Shown here: one piece after another, positions 1 to 30,826 of the stretch
How the letters are laid out: each line of letters begins with the position of its first letter
Position numbering within the stretch: the first letter of the stretch is position 1
Source of the DNA: Mantamonas sphyraenae STR306
Taxonomy: Eukaryota > Protista > CRuMs
Direction: 5' to 3'
Assembly: GCA_026936335.1 (NCBI GenBank)
Contig: JAPMXV010000059.1
Location: 268,105-332,104, forward strand
Length of the DNA: 64,000 nucleotides
The notes under the pieces: generated by a model
Database searches by the model: none
What the model saw: the letters and a program-made list of their open reading frames with translations, nothing else
Told to the model about the DNA's origin: nothing
Position numbers and translations under genes: made by a program

Positions 1-2100
1 CCTCGCCAGCGTCGCTTTCTCCCCTTCGTCCTGTCCGTGTACATCCTCGTTGCCAAACACTTCTTCGCGGTCGCGCTTGCGGCCAGTCGGCAGCCCACTC
101 GACCCGCCCCCGACGTCGTTCATCAGCGAATCAAAGCCATTCTGGCCAAACGCATCCGTGGCAAACGAGTCCACAACCTCTGCAGCTACGGTGGCAGGCG
201 ACATGCGCGGCTGTGCCCTGCGTGCCGCTCGCTCAAGCTTGTTGTTGAACAGTCGCAGCAACATCGTCCTGTTCTTGAGCACCTCCTGCGTGCGTAGGTA
301 TTTACATACACGCACAAAAGTCACCAAAAGCGAGTGCATAGCAAGATGCACGTTGTCAATGCCCGTTTGCTGGGCCTGCTCGTGGCCCGGCAGTCTGCGT
401 CGCTTGCTGCCCTGTCGCAGCATGCTCGCGCCGTTTGTCGACGTGAGTGCTAAATGTCGCTCGTGGCCCACTTGAGGGCATGCAAGGTACACAATGTCTT
501 CTACCAGCAGCGTCACAACCTCCAGAAGCCGCCCGTGCGCATTCAGTGCCTCCAAGCACCCCTCCGCCTGCCTTTCCGTCACCTTGACTCCCAATAGTGT
601 GCTCATGGCTCCGTCAGCATCGGAGGTGTCTCTGCGTATCAGTTCTATCGCACGATCACACAGCTGCGGCGTCCACATGGCTCCGTCGCTTGCAGCGGCA
701 AACACTTCGCCTGCGTCCATCCCCTGCAGGGCCTCGTCACTGAGTTGCTCCGATTGTATCTGTGCACGCATCTCTTCCAACACTGTGTGCAGCGCCGTGT
801 GGTGTGCAAACGCATCCTGTGGCAGCAGGCCGGCTTGCAAACATCCGCGAACCACAATCGGCATGCACGTCTGTTCACTTGACCCTATCCTTGCGACGGC
901 CAGCGTGTCGTCACGTATGACCTCCAAAAGGGCGTCGACGTGTGCGTTTGTCTCCGTGTCGACAAGCGTGTGCATGGCCACGACGATGCGTGGCAACATG
1001 GTGCCCAGCACACACCTGTACCTTGCCATGCGGCTGCTTCCTGCCTCGGCCTCGTGTGCCTCTGCATCTCTGTGTATCACCAATGCCGTGGTCTTCCACA
1101 CCGTCTCGTACGTTTCCTGCAACGGCCGGTTGCCCAGCCGGTGCAGGTTGAACAACTTTTGTGCGTGCTCGAGCGCGTCAAACACCTCATGTGCTCCCAG
1201 CACCAGGTGGCTCAAGTACGCTTTGAGTGGGTAGCCCCTGTCCAACGGCTGTGTGATGCTGATGTTGTTTGTGAGCAACAGGCAGCCCGTGTTGAACTGG
1301 GCCGCGTGGGTAGAGGTTGACGACTCGCTCTCACTCTTCACATAGAACCCCTTGGGTGAACTGGCCACCAGAAACGCTTGCCAGTTGGGCGTGGAACACT
1401 GCCGCTCAAACACAGCGAGCGCAGGGACGTGGCTGCCCCGTGCCAGCGTCGCTTGCCACTGTTCGGGTTGCTTCCGTCGAGCGACGTACAACAGAGTGCG
1501 CTCCCACGACGAACGCAGCCATCGTTCCACGCACGCGGTCGCCCGCTGTTGCACAGCGTCGATGAGATGAGCACCCTTGGTGTCGCCTTGGGTCTCTTTG
1601 TGTTCACTGTCCAGCTGCGTCGTGGCCAGGAAGAGCTGGAAGGCTTGCAGACATGCGCTGCACGCCAGCCCTGCCCGGTCCTGGTTGCCGCTGCTGCCGG
1701 CGTAGGGCAGAGAAGACTGCCGAAGGGTGTTTTGTAGGGCACAGTGCAGGTCGGTGCTGTTCATGAACGCATACACCAGGTCGAAAACTGCCAGAAAGTG
1801 CAGGGGCTTGTTTGTCACCTCCATGGCCCGGTCACACAGGGTGCACACAAGCAACAGCGGGTCCAGCACTTGTGTGTTCAGTGCATACGCCACGTACTCC
1901 TTGACGCGAGCACTGGGCACGCGCGGAGTGAGCATCACATCCAACAGTTCGCGTACCACAGCCTGCTGCACTTGCACCTCGTCCTCTGCCAGTCGCTTGC
2001 TGTCCAGATACGCCTGCAGCTGCACACCCCACTCCAACTCGTTGAATCTGCGCTCCACAGCCAACGCAATCGAGGATCGCTGCGCCGTGCCAAACTCCAT
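1..2100 (-). CDS. Mediator tail subunit Med24/Med5-like helical protein (3' end lies beyond the window)
   Basis: Frame starts at ATG 2100; no stop found in the stretches I translated down towards position 1. It is absent from the ORF track because it has no stop in the window. N-terminus MEFGTAQRSSIALAVERRFNELEWGVQLQAYL...ELLDVMLTPRVPSARVKEYVAYALNTQVLDPLLLV resembles, by eye, the Med24 N-terminus (AW.ERWS..QW...P.PN..ILSYLKYAISSQ). Confidence 0.55.
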   Translation of the reverse strand, partial: MEFGTAQRSSIALAVERRFNELEWGVQLQAYLDSKRLAEDEVQVQQAVVRELLDVMLTPRVPSARVKEYVAYALNTQVLDPLLLVCTLCDRAMEVTNKPLHFLAVFDLVYAFMNSTDLHCALQNTLRQSSLPYAGSSGNQDRAGLACSACLQAFQLFLATTQLDSEHKETQGDTKGAHLIDAVQQRATACVERWLRSSWERTLLYVARRKQPEQWQATLARGSHVPALAVFERQCSTPNWQAFLVASSPKGFYVKSESESSTSTHAAQFNTGCLLLTNNISITQPLDRGYPLKAYLSHLVLGAHEVFDALEHAQKLFNLHRLGNRPLQETYETVWKTTALVIHRDAEAHEAEAGSSRMARYRCVLGTMLPRIVVAMHTLVDTETNAHVDALLEVIRDDTLAVARIGSSEQTCMPIVVRGCLQAGLLPQDAFAHHTALHTVLEEMRAQIQSEQLSDEALQGMDAGEVFAAASDGAMWTPQLCDRAIELIRRDTSDADGAMSTLLGVKVTERQAEGCLEALNAHGRLLEVVTLLVEDIVYLACPQVGHERHLALTSTNGASMLRQGSKRRRLPGHEQAQQTGIDNVHLAMHSLLVTFVRVCKYLRTQEVLKNRTMLLRLFNNKLERAARRAQPRMSPATVAAEVVDSFATDAFGQNGFDSLMNDVGGGSSGLPTGRKRDREEVFGNEDVHGQDEGEKATLAR

Positions 2101-4013
2101 GAGCCAGAGCGAGGTGGGTGTTGGCGAAATACGCGCACTCTGGATACTCGATGGCCAGGCGAATGTCCTCTGGCACAGACGCTTTGGCACAGTCGACACC
2201 CGTTGTCTACGTGCACGCCTCAACCTCGCCCTCGCCCAACAGGCTCGCGAGAAACAGCTCGCTGCCGAAGCCGAAGCCGCCGCCAATGACGACGAATACG
2301 ACGAACGCGTCGACACGGACGATGTCGCCGACCGTGCCTCTTCCACACACGAGAGCGTGGGCGGAGCGAGCAGCAGCAGCAGTGGTCGAGCCAGTGGCAG
2401 TGTCGGACCCAAGGCTGACGACGACACGTCCTCCAAACAGGCTGACCAGGACCCGCAGCTCGATCTGCAAGCCGTACGCAGCCTGTTCGGCATCCCTTCC
2501 AACGGCGAGCTGTCCTTTGCAGTGGCAAACGACTTTCTCGAGCAGGTGGACGATCCGCACACGGTGGGCGCCTCGTCCCCTGTCCTGCGGCTGCCCACCT
2601 TGCCCGCGCTGTTCCCGCTCGCCTTGGTCGTCCACGCCGACCTGTTCTTCCTCGCTCTCCCGGCCACAGAGCCCACCGTGGACCTCGACACACCCATGCT
2701 TGACTTGTAAGTGACCCATTACAACGCAGAGCATGTTCATTGTCGTGTCATCACATGCCTTTGGCCCGTTCGAGGTGATTCGCGACCGGGCAACTCACAC
2801 ACACACTCCTCACACTCTCCACAGACCCTGTGTCACCATGGCACTGCAAGTATTGCAGGACATGGCCCAATTACACAGCTCACTTCTGGGAGGAAACCTG
2901 GATGAGCTCACACGGAGCGCCATGCTTCACTCGTTCGTGTCGCTCATGATGCCCTTTGGCAAGCCGCTGGACACCGATGTGAACAACGTGCGCAAAATCA
3001 TTTCCACTGAATTCCCTCGTCCCGAGACACTGCATGAAGCTAGACCGGCCTGGAAGCCCTATGTGCACCGTGGCAAGCAGCGCTTGGACTTTGCCGTGCG
3101 TGAGAAGCTCAACGTTGTTCTGTACGACCAGGAGGAGCTCACGGACGTGTGTCAGGTCCACGGACGCATCCGGTGTCGTGCAGAGATCGAAGGCGTGCCC
3201 AGCGTCACGCTGGCACTGGCCAACCACACCAACATTGCTCACATGAGCAGCCACCACTGTGTACAGACTCCCGACTCCTTCACAGCCCACCAGATCTGCT
3301 TCACGCCGCCTCTCGACGTGTTCGACCTCATCCAGTACCAGGCTGTCGACGCATACACCTCCCCAATCCTCGGCTTCTACCAGATGATGGAGAACGAACA
3401 GCAGCCACACCAGGTCGACGTCCTCGTCCAGCTCAAGCTCGCCATGCCCGACGTCAACAACTTTGAATACTGCGAGGTCCGCATCCCGTTTGCCAATCGC
3501 GGTCCCATCAAGTCTCATCAGCTCCAGCCTACAAACGGCTCTGTCTCTCTCAGTGACGACCGCAAGGCCATCCTCTGGTCCATTGGCAACCGCTTTGCCT
3601 CGCGCAACCTCGAAGTTGCCCTGCCGGGCAGCGTGTTTTTCGCATCCGACCAAGATGGCCAGCAAGCAGCCTCAACGTCTTCCTCTTCGTCGTCGTCGTC
3701 GTCGCCCTCCTCCTCCGCGGCAAACAAGGGCTCCAGCTCCGACGACCCGTTTCTCTGCGGGCCCAACAGTTTCATCGAGCTGCGTTTCCGCATGCCCTTC
3801 TCCCTCAGCGAGGTGTCCATTGATCAAAAGTCTGTGTCTGTGTTTGGCAAGAACACGCGTGTGGCCGTCAATGTGGAACACACCCTCGAGTCGGATTCGT
3901 TTATCATCTGGAATTCGCTCGGGAAGGCAGCTAGCGTGGCCACACCCCCACACCCCAACCAGTGGGTTTCGCTTGACGAATCCATTGTTGACAACGAGCC
4001 CATAGCTCAATGA
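2099..4013 (+). CDS. AP5M1: AP-5 complex subunit mu
   Basis: Exons 2099-2706 and 2825-4013; intron GTAAGT...CACAG restores the frame (LP-CVT). Motifs IRALWIL...HRRFGTVD, MPFGKPLDT, PAWKPY..GKQRLDFAVRE, mu-homology domain with CFTPPLD and ending IIWNSLG. Confidence 0.9.
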
Positions 4014-4039: not shown

Positions 4040-6087
4040 TCAAAAACGCACTGCAGACACTCCTGGGCGCGTTGTGGACGCGTTGCCCACACGCTGTTTC
4101 CTCTGTTTCATCTCTTCCTTCTTGAATGCCTGCTTCAGCGTCTTCTTCTCCTTGCGGCGAGCCTTGCGTGCAGCCTTGACTGCCTTTTTGCGCATGCGCT
4201 TCTCCTCTGCCGATTCGTGCTTGTCTCGCTTCTCTCCCATGTTGACCGACGCCACCGAATAGTCGTCGTCGTCGTCGTCATACTCGTCTTCCTCCTCTTC
4301 CTCTTCCTCCTCTGCCTCCTCGTCGTTGTTTGCCACGTCGCTCTTTGCTGCGCGCCTCGCCTCGAGCACTCCCATGGGCAGGCCGTGCTTGTTCAGCTTG
4401 ATCTGCTTCTTGGCCGGCCGCACGTCCTTGATGAGACCCGGGTGGTTCTCTGTGTTTGTCAACTGGCTTGCGTACGACACCACGTCCCACTGCGCATCCC
4501 TGTCCTTGACACGAATCCACTCATACTCGTCCTCGTCCTCGTCCTCGCCCTCTTCCTCCCTCCCGTCCCCGTCCTCTTTGCCGTTGTCCTTCTTTGCCTC
4601 CTCCTGTGCTTTGGCCATTGCTACTTCCTTGGCCTTTTCGCTTCCTGGTACAGGCACAAGCATGGGCGGTTCGTCTTCGCTGTCGCTGTCGCTGTCGCTT
4701 TCATCCGCGTCTCCGGCCGCTGCCTTTGCTGCCGCCTCTTCCGCTGCATCCTCCTCCTCCAACTTCTTGTACACAGCCTGCACCCCCTGGCGCTTTTTGG
4801 CTTCCTCCTCGTCAAACTCGTCGAAAAGATGCTCCACGGCCTCCAGGCTCAGGCCACCCTTGTTTTCCAGTCGCGGGTCTGTGTCCTCGAATCCGCCAAT
4901 GTCTTCCTCGCCGTACGCCTTGTTCATCACCTGTTCAAAGTGCTCCTCAGCAAAACCTCCGTCGTGTTTGTGCGTGCGCGTCGACGCGTACGAGCGCTCC
5001 TCCATGGCAAACTGCCGTCCGCCACCCATTCCAGCCTCAAACTCGTCGCCGCTGCTGAATTCTTCGAACCCGTCGCTGTCGTAGTAATCCAGGTTTTCGT
5101 AGCCAACCATCTTTTCGTATTCGTCCAGCGACATGCCCTTCTTCTCGGGCTTGCCTTCACCGCCGGCCAACGCTACAAAGTCGTCCTCCAGTTCGTCCAC
5201 TTCCTCATCATCCACCAGTCCGTCCAACACACCCATCACGTCTGTATCCAGCGTCGGGTCGAATCCCGTCGGTGCTGCCAGATTCAGCATGCCTACATCG
5301 GCCTCCTGGGCCAGCGACGAGCCGAACAGGGAGCCCTCGTTTGCCGAGCTGCCCAAGGCCTCCTGAGCCTCGGCAGACACAAACTCGGCGCCGGCCATGG
5401 GCAGCAAATGCTGCGAGTAATCATATCCGTCGTCAGGAAAGGCATAGTTGTCGTACTCGGCCTTGGAGAGCATTTTGGGCTGCAGGTCGGCGTACAGCTC
5501 GCCGTCGTTGCCCACGTGCTGCATACTACCACGACCCTGCGCTCGTTCATACTCTTCATACACTTCGTCGTCGTGGTAAAAGTACTCTGCGTCAAAGCCG
5601 TCTGCAATCAGGTCCTCCTTCGTCGTCCCGCCCTGTGTTTGCGTTGCAAAATGCACACCGAAAATCCGCGAGTCAGGTTCCGTCCTGCCCCACGGCCCAC
5701 GCTGTCTCTCTGACACACGTCTTTACGCCACATGGCTGTACGCCACACACATGGGCCCTTCTGGCGTGCATGGGCTCCACATCACAGATGCGTTGGCTGG
5801 AGAACGGCCGGCTGTGCATGGGCTTCTTGGAAAGCCAGCTCCAAACCCAGCCGTCGCCGATACAACACGCGTGGAGCAGCTGCTTGCACAGGCAAACCAC
5901 AGCCAAAGTGGGAAACAAAGGGCATGCGAACACTCACCTGGCGCTTGTGCGGATTTTCCATCTCAATGAGGACCCGCTGCGAAGCATTCTCGTCGGCGAT
6001 GAGCGGGTCGCGTTGCGAACGGTGTCCCACCACAAAGTGAACAGCCTTCTTCTTGTCAATGAACTGCTTTTTACTGTGTTTGCCCAT
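4040..6087 (-). CDS. LTV1: Low temperature viability protein LTV1 (40S biogenesis)
   Basis: Exons 6087-5938 and 5701-4040; intron GTGAGT...GACAG, phase 0. Motifs FIDKKKAVHFVVGHRSQRDPL, DDGYDYSQHL, WDVVSYASQLTNTENHPGLI, ES.EEKR.RKKAVK..RK.RR.EKK..K.AFK.E. Confidence 0.92.
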
Positions 6088-6148
6088 GGTGAGATAGAAC
6101 AACGCGGCTGTTTTCGTTTGGTGCAGCAAGCGGGTTGCGGTCTGCAGC

Positions 6149-26389: not shown

Positions 26390-29300
26390 ATGGTGCGGAA
26401 GAAGCTAGACTCACGCATCCGCACTCTGATTCGGAATGGAGTGGCACAGAACCATCGATCGTTCTTTGTGATTGTGGGCGACCGAGGCAAGGACGTGGTG
26501 ATGCAATTGCACTACATGCTGACGAAGGAGCTGGCCAAGACGCGGCCGTCGGTGGTGTGGTGCTACAAGAAGGAACTGGGCTTCAGCAGGTATGGTGACA
26601 GGGAACGAGACGAGGGCAAGGGGGGCAAGGATGTGGCGTGGGGATGTGTGTGGGCCAGTTTCGGGGAGTACACACTGACGCAATGAGGACAGCCACCGGA
26701 AGAAGCGCATGCGGCAGATGCAGAAGCAGCTGCAGCGAGGCCTGGTGGACGCTGACCAGAACGACGCCTTTGACCTGTTTCTGTCGTCTACGAACATCCG
26801 ATACACATACTACAAGGACACACACAAAATCTTGGGCAACACATACGGCATGTGCGTGCTGCAGGATTTTGAGGCGTTGACACCGAATCTGCTTGCGCGG
26901 ACGGTGGAGACGGTGGAAGGAGGCGGCCTGGTGGTGCTTCTCCTGCGCACCATGGGTTCGCTCAAGCAGCTCTATGACTTTTCCATGGATGTGCACGCAC
27001 GCTTCCGCACAGAGTCACACAAGGTAGGCAGCGTGGTTGGGCGTGGGAAGGGCCCGGGTGACGGGAAATGCGGCGTGGGCGGATTTTCCAGTGAGGGCAT
27101 ACCTGTGGGCTGACACATGGGACGGTACACACACAGCACATTGTGCCTCGATTCAACGAGCGCTTCCTGCTGTCGCTGGCGGACTGTGCGAGCTGTATGG
27201 TGGTGGACGACGAGTTGAACCTACTGCCGATCTCGTCGCACATGCGCAGTCTGGAGGCGCGTGCGCGGTTGGACGAGGAGGGTCAGGTGGTGTTGTCAGC
27301 CAGCAATGCAGAACTGGAGGAGGTGAAAGAGTCGCTGAGGGACACGCAGCCTGTGGGATCGCTGGTGTCGTGCGCAAAGACGTTGGACCAGGCCAAAGCG
27401 ATCATGACGTTTGTTGAGGCCATCTCTGAAGAGACGCTGCGTTCGACGGTTGCGCTGACGGCAGGACGTGGACGTGGCAAGAGTGCAGCGCTGGGCATTG
27501 CCATGGCGGCAGCGGTGGCGCACGGGTACGCAAACATCTTTGTGACGTCGCCGACACCGGAGAACCTGAAGACGCTGTTCCAGTTTGTGTTTCGTGGCTT
27601 TGATGCGCTCGGGTATGAGGAACACGTGGACTACGAACTAGTGCAGTCGACAAACCCGGAATTCAACGGGGCCATTGTGAGGGTGAACATCTTCCGCGAG
27701 CACCGGCAGACGATCCAGTACATTGCGCCGACGGACGGAGACAAGCTGGGCCAGGCGGAGCTGCTGGTAATCGACGAGGCGGCAGCGATTCCGTTGCCGT
27801 ACGTGAAGAAGCTGCTGGGCCCCTACCTGGTGTTTATCTCGTCGACGGTGAACGGGTACGAGGGCACGGGCAGGTCGCTGTCGCTGAAACTGTTCAAACA
27901 GCTGCGCGGCAAAGCAAGCGCAGGAGACACAAGCAGCAGTAGCAGCAGTAGCAGCAGTTCCGAAGCGAGTGGGATCACAGCACGGCAACTGCGGGAGATC
28001 AAGCTGCAGGAACCGATTCGGTATTCGGAGGGCGACGACGTAGAGTCGTGGCTGCACAAGCTGCTGTGCCTGGATGCGACAAGCGTGCCGCGACTGATGA
28101 GCGGGGTGCCTTCTGTGAACGAGTGCCAGCTGTACTATGTGAACAGGGACGTGTTGTTTTCGTACCACCGCGTGGCGGAGGCGTTCCTGCAGCGCATGAT
28201 GGCGTTGTACGTGAGTTCTCATTATCGCAACACGCCGAACGATCTGCAAATGCTTGCAGATGCGCCTGCGCACCACCTGTTTGTGCTTCTGGGCCCCGTG
28301 ACGACCAGCATTCCTGAGGTGCTGTGTGTGATCCAGGTTGCGCTGGAGGGGGAGATCTCGCGAGAGACGGTGGTGAGGAACTTTGCAGAGGGCAACCGTG
28401 CGTCGGGTGACATGATTCCATGGACCATTGCACAGCAGTATCAGGACTCGGAGTTTGCACGTCTGAGTGGAGCGCGCGTGGTGCGCATTGCGACGCATCC
28501 GGACCACCAGCGCATGCGGTACGGCTCACGTGCTATGGAACTGCTGAGTGAGTACTATGCCGGTGCCATGGTGAGCCTGGACGAGGAGGGAGGTGAGGAG
28601 GATGACGAGGAGGATGACGAGGACGACGACGACGAGGTGGACGTGGGCAAAGGCAAGTCAAAGGAGAAATCGACGCTGCTGGTGGAGCAACTGGCACCGA
28701 AGAAATTGACAAAGCCTCTGCTGATTGGATTGGAGGAGCGCAAGGCGGAGCGACTTCACTATCTGGGAGTGGCGTACGGGCTGACGCAAAGTCTGTTCAA
28801 CTTTTGGACAAAGAACGGGTTTGTGCCGCTGTACATCCGATCGACAGCCAACGAGCTGACGGGAGAGCACTCGTGCATGATGGTGAAGAAGCTGGAGAAC
28901 GAGGGGAGCGGAGGAGTGGTTGCAGAAGGAGACTGGTTGGGCCCGTTCAGCGAAGACTACCGTCGGCGCTTCCTGTCGCTGATGTCGTTTGAGTTTCAGA
29001 AGCTGCACCCAACGCTGGCGATGAGCGTGCTGCGCAGTGTGCAGCGTGCTGCGCGAGAAGAGGGCGGGAGCAAGACGCAGGGCAAGGCGCTGAGCAGGGG
29101 CGAACTGGACATGTTTCTGAGCGGACACGACATCAGGCGACTGGACACGTACAGACGCAGTCTGATCGATTATCACGTGATCATGGACCTTGTGCCAGTG
29201 CTCGCGCGGTTGTGGTTTGAGGAGCGGCTGCAGGTGGAGGGCAAGGTGACGATGACGAGCCAGACGATCCTGATGGCAATTGGTCTGCAGCACAAGAGCG

Positions 29301-29788
29301 TAGAGCAGGTTGCGCAGGAGCTGGGGATCCAGGTGAAGCAGACGCTGGCGCTTTTCAACAAGATCATTGGCACGACGGTGAAGCACCTGAACGAGCTGGA
29401 AGAGGAGGAGATTGCTCGTGAGCTGCCGTCCAAGTATGAGTACCAGGACGTGGGTGGCGAGATGATGCCAGTGGAGGAGTCGCTGCACGGTGAGCTGGGC
29501 GAAGCCGGACAAAGGGAGGTTGAGCGAGTGCGCGAAAAGATGGTGGGCAAGCGACGAAGAGACGAGGAGGAGGTGTGGGAAGATGGAAATGAGGATGAAT
29601 TGGAGATGGACAGGGGCGGAGAGGATGACGAGGAGGTGCTGGCCACACCGGAAGCGAGCAGCAGCAGCCGGTCGAAGAAGAGTGAGAAGAAGAGCGGCAA
29701 GAAGAGTGGCAAGAAGAGTGGCAAGAAGGAGAAGAAGAGCGAGAAGAAGAGTGGCAAGAAGAAGAAGAAGCAGAAGCGTGATGAATGA
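26390..29788 (+). CDS. NAT10: RNA cytidine acetyltransferase NAT10/Kre33
   Basis: Exons 26390-26589, 26693-27023 and 27137-29788. Motifs LQDFEALTPNLLARTVETVEGGG, AGRGRGKSAALG, IDEAAAIPLP, GYEGTGRSLSLKL, SHYRNTPNDLQ, RVVRIATHP; Lys-rich tail. Confidence 0.97.
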
Positions 29789-29807: not shown

Positions 29808-30728
29808 TCAGTCGTCCTGCAGCATCAGGGCAGCCACGAGGTTGGCAGCCTCTTCGGCCTCGCGTCCAGCACGCTCAGCCTCAGCCTTGAGTGCGTCGGC
29901 CTTGGCCTTGGCACGTGCGGCCTCCTCCTGAGCCTTGGCGGCCGTGTCGGTCAGCACAGCCGACTCGGTCTCTGCGGCGTCGGCCTGGGCCTCGGCATCA
30001 GCGACCTCCTGGGCACGCTCGACAGCCTCCAGAGACGCCTGCTCGGCGTGGGCCTTGGCCTCCTCCAGAGCCTCCTGGCGAAGGCGGGCCTCTTCCTCCA
30101 TGGCCTTCTGGAACTCGATCTCCTCCTCGCGCGAGCGATCCACGCTGTTGCTGGAGCTGGAGTTGTTGATACCGCTTGAGTTGTTGCCACCAAGGAGCAC
30201 GGTGACGCGCAGGGTGCCGTCGAGCTCGTTGGCGTAGCGGATGGCCTCGTTCAGCTCGTCGGTGTTGGTCAGCGTGCACAGATCGCCATCCTCATCCTGG
30301 TACTTGACGGTGAAGTCAATGTTGCGCAGCTGGAACACCACAGCGACCTGAGGTGTGCACACAAGCAAGCGTCAGTGGTGGTGATCTTCAAAGGCGGGCG
30401 AAAAAGGAGAGGGTTTTCCGTTTGTCTTTTGGGAGACATCGGGCGACGGCGTGGACATGTGGCAAGAGGAAGCGAGGACGACGCATGCACAGTGTTGGGT
30501 GATGGACGGGGGATATGAGGTGCGATGATGCACGGTGAAGTAGGCCAGTGCGGCCGGATTGGTGACGTGTGGCCGGAAGAAAAGAAGGGTTGGAATTCCA
30601 CGCGTTTGCGGGATTTTCTGTGCAGAGCAGAGACAACGAACCTGGTTCAGGAGGCCCGTGAAGGTCACGTCGTCGGCGGCGGTGAGACGGCGCTTGTCGT
30701 TGTTGTAAGTGAGCTTAAGCTTGACCAT
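29808..30728 (-). CDS. Small PB1-domain + Ala/Glu coiled-coil protein, paralogue A (~208 aa)
   Basis: Exons 30728-30642 and 30347-29808. PB1 basic start MVKLKLTY..DKRR and OPCA motif VKYQDEDGDLCTL...DELNEAI, then an EA-rich helix. Confidence 0.85.
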
Positions 30729-30826
30729 GTTGTGGTGAGATGTGGGTGCGTGTGGTGTTGTGCGACGGAGCGCAAACCCCGGCCCAGCTTTTCAACGGCA
30801 ACAGGAGCGCAAACCCACACGGTGTG

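Follow-up and report, generated by a model that had tools for sequence, protein, structure and literature searches.

Animals, yeast and plants are well known to have divergent gene pairs that overlap, as well as bidirectional promoters. In such pairs both genes have their 5' ends adjoining, promoter elements are shared or interleaved, and the head-to-head transcripts can overlap in antisense orientation at their 5' ends (PMC2335118, PMC2194621, PMC10887517). Overlaps are also found in nucleomorph genomes, for which 11–44 overlapping genes were listed, the tail-to-tail arrangement being most frequent (PMC3514955). Here, we describe a probable, extreme head-to-head abutment in a 64,000-nucleotide (nt) stretch of DNA from the protist Mantamonas sphyraenae (contig JAPMXV010000059.1; the whole stretch is referred to as the window). 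The two genes involved are AP5M1, which codes for the mu subunit of the AP-5 complex on the plus strand, and a gene on the minus strand (hereafter the partner), and the candidate start codons of both are located on one palindromic CATG. An earlier reading of the sequence (the original prediction) had called this arrangement very unusual for eukaryotic nuclear genes. Considering the published precedents (PMC3514955, PMC2335118) this was overstated, but the pair is an extreme outlier among the 21 divergent pairs that we sampled in the same genome. A text search of the literature for overlapping start codons with divergent genes found no paper, which is weak evidence of absence.

Positions 2098–2101 of the window read C2098 A2099 T2100 G2101. 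The plus-strand ATG (2099–2101) and the minus-strand ATG (2100–2098) have 2 base pairs (bp) in common and both belong to long open reading frames (ORFs), which confirmed the proposed geometry with both ATGs on one CATG. Neither frame is closed at the CATG: upstream of its ATG, the plus frame stays open as far as 1706 and the minus frame as far as 2718. Codon statistics showed that these extensions are antisense sequence devoid of coding signal. Our analysis also supported the earlier inference that there is zero non-coding promoter space between the two coding sequences.

As judged from its sequence, the plus-strand gene is a real AP-5 mu (AP5M1) gene, in agreement with the identity originally assigned to it. 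Residues 106–390 of the exon-2 ORF matched PF00928 (Adap_comp_sub; Pfam) with 107.5 bits (cut-off 31.6) and an E-value of 9.5e-31, and the closest relatives were AP-5 mu-1 proteins of Amoebozoa and animals (best E-value 1.2e-72, up to 39% identity). All named matches were AP-5 complex subunit mu-1 (Balamuthia, JGI, Callorhinchus, Manis), and the others were unnamed proteins with a mu-homology domain. Exon 1 ends in phase 2 ahead of a GTAAGT donor, and joining of the exons across the 2707–2824 intron restores LPCVTMALQVLQDM, which matches LP-CVTVTLQVLEDV of relatives (Balamuthia row P0005). In an alignment of 11 sequences, R12, W15, R28, T31 and V32 were invariant at the N-terminus. This motif begins at R12 (position 2132), 11 codons past ATG 2099, and its position (R12/W15) supported the claim that the AP5M1 start is constrained. 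ATG 2099 is the sole in-frame ATG ahead of R12 within usable range. It was also the top-scoring ATG of AP5M1, the other in-frame ATGs (1763 and 1823) scoring lower, and the stretch 2099–2131 (11 codons) totalled +4.6 bits in favor of coding over antisense sequence. The start Met of the relatives is located 2–4 residues ahead of the invariant Arg (8 in Balamuthia), and the N-terminus encoded at this locus is ∼7 residues longer than theirs. The protein resembles known AP-5 mu subunits in its mu-homology domain, its N-terminal R..W..R..TV motif and the names of its top matches; it differs from them in these extra N-terminal residues and in a low-complexity insert, acidic and rich in Ser, within exon 1.

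The longer N-terminus is one reason to consider that the partner starts at 2100 and AP5M1 elsewhere, either at a near-cognate codon within 2102–2131 or in an exon further upstream, with the CCAG at 2104–2107 as the splice acceptor. The T at −3 of ATG 2099 and the fact that CCAG is a common acceptor form in this genome point in the same direction. We give this possibility only a slim chance, as the nearest upstream plus-strand ATGs are 276 and 336 nt away and the plus frame there scored negative. Besides, the single donor that was tried by hand (GTGAGC near 1926) was out of frame, and neither a pyrimidine tract nor a CTGAC-like branch site was found ahead of 2107. Models of this kind would moreover enlarge the overlap with the partner and never remove it.

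At its other end, AP5M1 faces an LTV1-like gene (window 4040–6129, minus strand), with a first exon that begins MGKHSKKQFIDKKKAVHF near 6087 and a main exon at 4043–5716. The stop codon of this gene (4040–4042) is just 26 nt from that of AP5M1 (4011–4013), and therefore the 3' ends of both genes must overlap or nearly touch.

Codon statistics showed that the partner is a real gene as well, with a codon bias worth ∼195 bits per exon. It codes for a protein of ∼1,257 amino acids in two exons, which are separated by an 89-nt intron (GTGGGC...CCAG) just left of the window. Exon 2 (∼556 codons) lies outside the window at L015:6342–8010, and the continuation including the intron lies within L015:6342–8110 (L015 and similar labels denote other sequences of this genome). 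A stop codon that had earlier been read at window position −119 is due to read-through into the intron. The gene is present in a single copy, which makes a mix-up of paralogues unlikely.

The partner had been described as Med24-like, a label for which we found no support. Med24_N (PF11277) had zero matches in the partner protein in a Pfam search with E-values up to 10, and zero matches anywhere in the genome in a family scan, for which the control genomes were prokaryotic and which was hence without a positive control. When both exons were compared with PDB, only chance matches (E-value >1) were obtained, and the MED24 chains of Mediator structures were not matched. A word search with the partner protein found zero relatives, and its N-terminal 739 residues had no match among 1.84 billion representatives when searched exhaustively with HMMER. 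Exon 2 was included in the Pfam, PDB and atlas scans. In the language-model feature search, clusters of Med23, Med24 and Integrator appeared at a score of 0.85, and atlas feature scores across the partner exons ranged from 0.78 to 0.89, all of them below the level of evidence. On these grounds, an identity as Med24 was set aside as unsupported. A single-sequence AlphaFold model of the partner was all helical, with a mean predicted local distance difference test score (pLDDT) of 41.5, too poor for a fold search. The partner is a large protein without detectable relatives and is predicted to be all-helical. Size and helicity, the latter in a model of low confidence, are what it has in common with MED24; the absence of a Med24_N match, a PDB match to MED24 and HMMER relatives sets it apart. 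The suggestion that homology constrains the minus-strand start failed, since zero homologues of the partner were found.

Support for a start of the partner at 2100 comes from codon statistics and from the lack of any other in-frame ATG within range. We used a codon model trained on other ORFs from ∼204 kilobases (kb) of this genome. ATG 2100 was the most likely start with 195.2 bits; ATG 1935 reached 168.1 bits, and ATGs 2493 and 2697 further upstream 163.7–167.8 bits. A score of 25.8 bits was obtained for the 54 codons (2100–1938) that separate ATG 2100 from ATG 1935, the next one. Coding windows of 54 codons had an average of 20.1 bits (standard deviation 9.1), and a score of 25.8 bits was reached in 0.02% of open non-coding and 0.11% of open antisense windows. 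A coding-versus-antisense scan placed the change point of the switch from minus to plus strand at 2102. Taken together, the change point and the 25.8 bits (p ∼2e-4 to 1e-3) indicate that real coding sequence beginning on both strands at one CATG is beyond chance.

The count of head-to-head ATG distances, which the original prediction had suggested for the whole genome, covered the 21 divergent pairs in ∼204 kb of this 25-megabase (Mb) genome. The distances were −2, 11 (ambiguous), 39, 83, 100 and 112 bp, followed by values from 225 to 916 bp, with a median of ∼450 bp. The median gap between coding segments was 362 bp for divergent and 80 bp for convergent pairs. This genome normally keeps a promoter spacer, and the AP5M1/partner pair (−2) is its extreme. 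Being so far from the other pairs, it might be an artefact or a sign of decay, with the spacer lost in assembly or one of the two genes no longer expressed. This seems very improbable to us. Both frames run uninterrupted for 700 and ∼590 codons and show normal codon bias, splicing of the canonical AP5M1 intron restores a conserved motif, and the sequence bears no mark of a junction.

A CATG as such is within chance expectation. Of the predicted starts in the window and L002–L015, 45% had C at −1 and 69% had a purine at −3; T was avoided from −1 to −4. Because of the preference for C at −1, nearly half of the start codons carry an antisense ATG. Three of the 21 divergent pairs had an in-frame CATG that could serve as a start for both genes. 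For example, at L003 9000/9001 extension to the shared CATG lowered the likelihood (45.0 versus 52.9 bits), and the plus gene was better from ATG 9114. Similarly, at L006 7643/7644 the values were 44.2 versus 46.8 bits, with a better plus start at ATG 7745. These candidates in L003 and L006 look like chance upstream ATGs. Given both the proportion of starts in CATG and the number of pairs with an in-frame CATG, most "shared CATG" candidates met in annotation need a check by coding likelihood or homology before they are believed.

Another CATG at a divergent junction was seen in the window at 30726–30740. There, a PB1-like gene clearly starts at minus ATG 30728 (MVKLKLTYNNDKRRL). An upstream ORF of just 3 codons is all that the antisense plus ATG opens, and a THADA-like gene follows on the plus strand, with starts at 30740, 30827 and 30866 almost equally likely. 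This ambiguity of the plus start led us to reject 30728/30740 as a second example of a shared start.

Upstream sequences were informative with regard to mRNA leaders, for which the original prediction had considered that they might be antisense to the partner, absent or trans-spliced. The density of sense-strand ATGs was 0.007–0.013 per nt in the 75 nt ahead of predicted starts and ∼0.02 per nt further out. This depletion of upstream ATGs over ∼75 nt indicates ordinary short leaders in this genome as opposed to leaderless mRNAs. It bears on the idea that both proteins begin at the CATG but are translated from mRNAs with little or no leader, transcribed from a single palindromic bidirectional initiator centred on the CATG and overlapping by only a few bases. 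Such an initiator would agree with the symmetry of both starts about the palindrome and would need promoter space in the immediate flanks only. However, the leaders indicated at other genes are of the ordinary type, the CATG is accounted for by the preference for C at −1, the L003 and L006 candidates lose likelihood on extension, and motif analysis yielded no initiator motif. We consider this explanation quite unlikely. A comparably low probability is assigned to the broader proposal that the shared CATG is a recurrent selected architecture, be it a palindromic bidirectional initiator with leaderless or near-leaderless mRNAs or an obligate pairing of the antisense 5' leaders that couples expression of both genes.

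On each strand, the sequence upstream of the CATG is ATG-free in every frame. The stretch of 275 nt on the plus strand is likely where the AP5M1 promoter and leader would sit, and that of 392 nt on the minus strand is likely where those of the partner would sit. ATG-free runs of these lengths occurred at 3.3% (275 nt, plus) and 0.9% (392 nt, minus) genome-wide at antisense of coding DNA. The minus-strand stretch begins with a pyrimidine-rich run that includes CCCACC; AP5M1 codons 5–8 (EVGV) are the complement of this run just ahead of the partner ATG. CCCACC was 2.7-fold enriched in divergent spacers. More generally, C-rich words of 6–8 nt were strongly enriched in divergent spacers versus coding DNA (window and L002–L014), for example CCCCAC with 23 observed and 3.7 expected occurrences and CCACCCC in 7 of 19 spacers, and CT/GA runs were enriched as well. 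We regard the C-rich words and CT/GA runs as candidate promoter elements. TTTGC/GTTTGC was just 1.5–1.8-fold enriched in divergent spacers and had no orientation, and no usable predictor of start sites was obtained from the spacer motifs (C-rich words and TTTGC/GTTTGC). The composition of 2020–2139 was intermediate between coding and spacer DNA, and its 6-mer "spacer-likeness" was merely in the upper tail of coding DNA. The antisense frame with shared third positions was also considered as the most stop-free one; it had 1 stop per 61 codons versus 1 per 170 in another antisense frame, and this candidate was dropped.

The explanation that we favor, with moderate confidence, is that both ATGs of the CATG are true and that the transcription units overlap head to head, with start sites inside each other's first codons. 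If the shared starts are real, each gene must contain the promoter and the mRNA leader of the other. Both ATGs would then be real start codons, and the coding sequences would abut with a 2-bp overlap and zero spacer. We infer that both genes are expressed, the transcription start site of each being located within the first codons of the other, some tens of nucleotides in, such that each mRNA would carry a short leader antisense to the N-terminal codons of its neighbor. The AUG of the CATG would be the first one reached by the scanning ribosome, since both upstream stretches are AUG-free. With regard to origin, it is plausible that an already small spacer was lost and that the AP5M1 start moved upstream. 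Such a migration is suggested by the ∼7 extra residues, which are encoded by the complement of the pyrimidine-rich run ahead of the partner ATG.

Several observations weigh against this explanation. First, 200–700 bp between ATGs is typical of divergent pairs, and the abutment is thus atypical here. Second, the valley of the likelihood in the change-point scan is flat from ∼2040 to 2110, and the 23 partner codons nearest the CATG are weakly coding (bins of −2.9 and +3.4 in the coding-versus-antisense model). Third, both ATGs have a pyrimidine at −3, a position occupied by a purine in 69% of predicted starts, and the N-terminus of the partner is without comparative support, its homologues numbering zero. 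Finally, when synonymous codons were resampled with the proteins held fixed, 16% and 22% of the trials were free of antisense ATGs, and the ATG-free stretches are therefore largely an effect of composition. Selection against upstream AUGs, which appeared strong by the genome-wide comparison but not under this control, was rejected as strong evidence.

Some of these observations would be expected if AP5M1 starts at 2099 and the partner elsewhere, either at ATG 1935 (Met56, leaving a 163-bp spacer) or in a small coding exon further upstream that is spliced just below 2100 (an example acceptor is the GCAG after codon 7). The lack of homologues leaves the partner N-terminus unfixed, the coding signal of the 23 codons nearest the CATG is weak, and the −3 base is poor at minus ATG 2100 and a G at ATG 1935. 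Besides, a pyrimidine-rich run followed by AG is present at the minus start, and most acceptors of this genome have the form CAG. On the other hand, codons 2031–1938 by themselves contribute 17.8 bits, and the score of the full 54 codons is coding-like and very rare otherwise. A start at 1935 would cost 27 bits. Upstream, minus-strand ATGs are met only after 393 and 597 nt, within AP5M1 exon 1, a region in which the minus frame scores strongly negative. Overall, we find a partner start elsewhere unlikely, though it deserves consideration.

Features of the locus are listed below.

Coordinates of features around the shared CATG (window positions)
Feature	Position	Strand	Basis
CATG with both candidate start codons	2098..2101		Sequence and translations
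AP-5 mu (AP5M1) exon 1, begins MSQSEVGVGEIRALW	2099..2706	+	Alignment, ATG likelihood, donor
AP5M1 intron, 118 nt, GTAAGT...CACAG	2707..2824	+	Sequence compared with relatives, intron form of the genome
AP5M1 exon 2, including mu-homology domain; stop 4011–4013	2825..4013	+	PF00928, AP-5 mu-1 relatives
Partner exon 1, ∼701 codons, continues past the left edge of the window	1..2100	−	Coding statistics
ATG-free in every frame, 275 nt, antisense to partner codons 2–92	1824..2098	+	
ATG-free in every frame, 392 nt, antisense to AP5M1 codons 2–131	2101..2492	−	

Introns in the window and L003–L015 are mostly 70–190 nt long, with donors of the form GT(A/G)(A/C/G)GT and acceptors that are mostly CAG, and a CTGAC-like word is often found 15–30 nt ahead of the acceptor. 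Elsewhere in the window (27134–29785, plus strand), an orthologue of NAT10 was found whose best database proteins (animals, Capsaspora, Dictyostelium and plants) are just 50–56% identical, suggesting that the protein collection contains no close sequenced relative of this organism.

If both starts hold, two RNA polymerase II promoters and two leaders would be contained wholly within coding sequence of the opposite strand. The locus would then offer a clean test of the minimum size of a eukaryotic bidirectional promoter and of how promoter, leader and codon constraints act on common bases. It could also be used to examine whether antisense leaders couple expression or interfere with it. Compared with head-to-head pairs of animals, yeast and plants, the AP5M1/partner pair is similar in that the genes are on opposite strands with their 5' ends together. 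In those pairs, however, it is usually the untranslated regions that overlap, with start codons tens to hundreds of bp apart, whereas in the present pair it would be the coding sequences that abut, with 2 bp common to both start codons. A second likeness is with compacted genomes, such as cryptophyte nucleomorphs and microsporidia, in which intergenic DNA is reduced to zero or below and transcripts begin or end inside neighboring genes. Nucleomorphs differ in that their spacers average 93–200 bp and their overlaps are chiefly tail to tail. The genome described here has 25 Mb, a spacing of ∼360–450 bp for divergent and ∼80 bp for convergent genes, and spliceosomal introns of ∼70–190 nt, and it is in this setting that the probable head-to-head abutment of AP5M1 and its partner is found.

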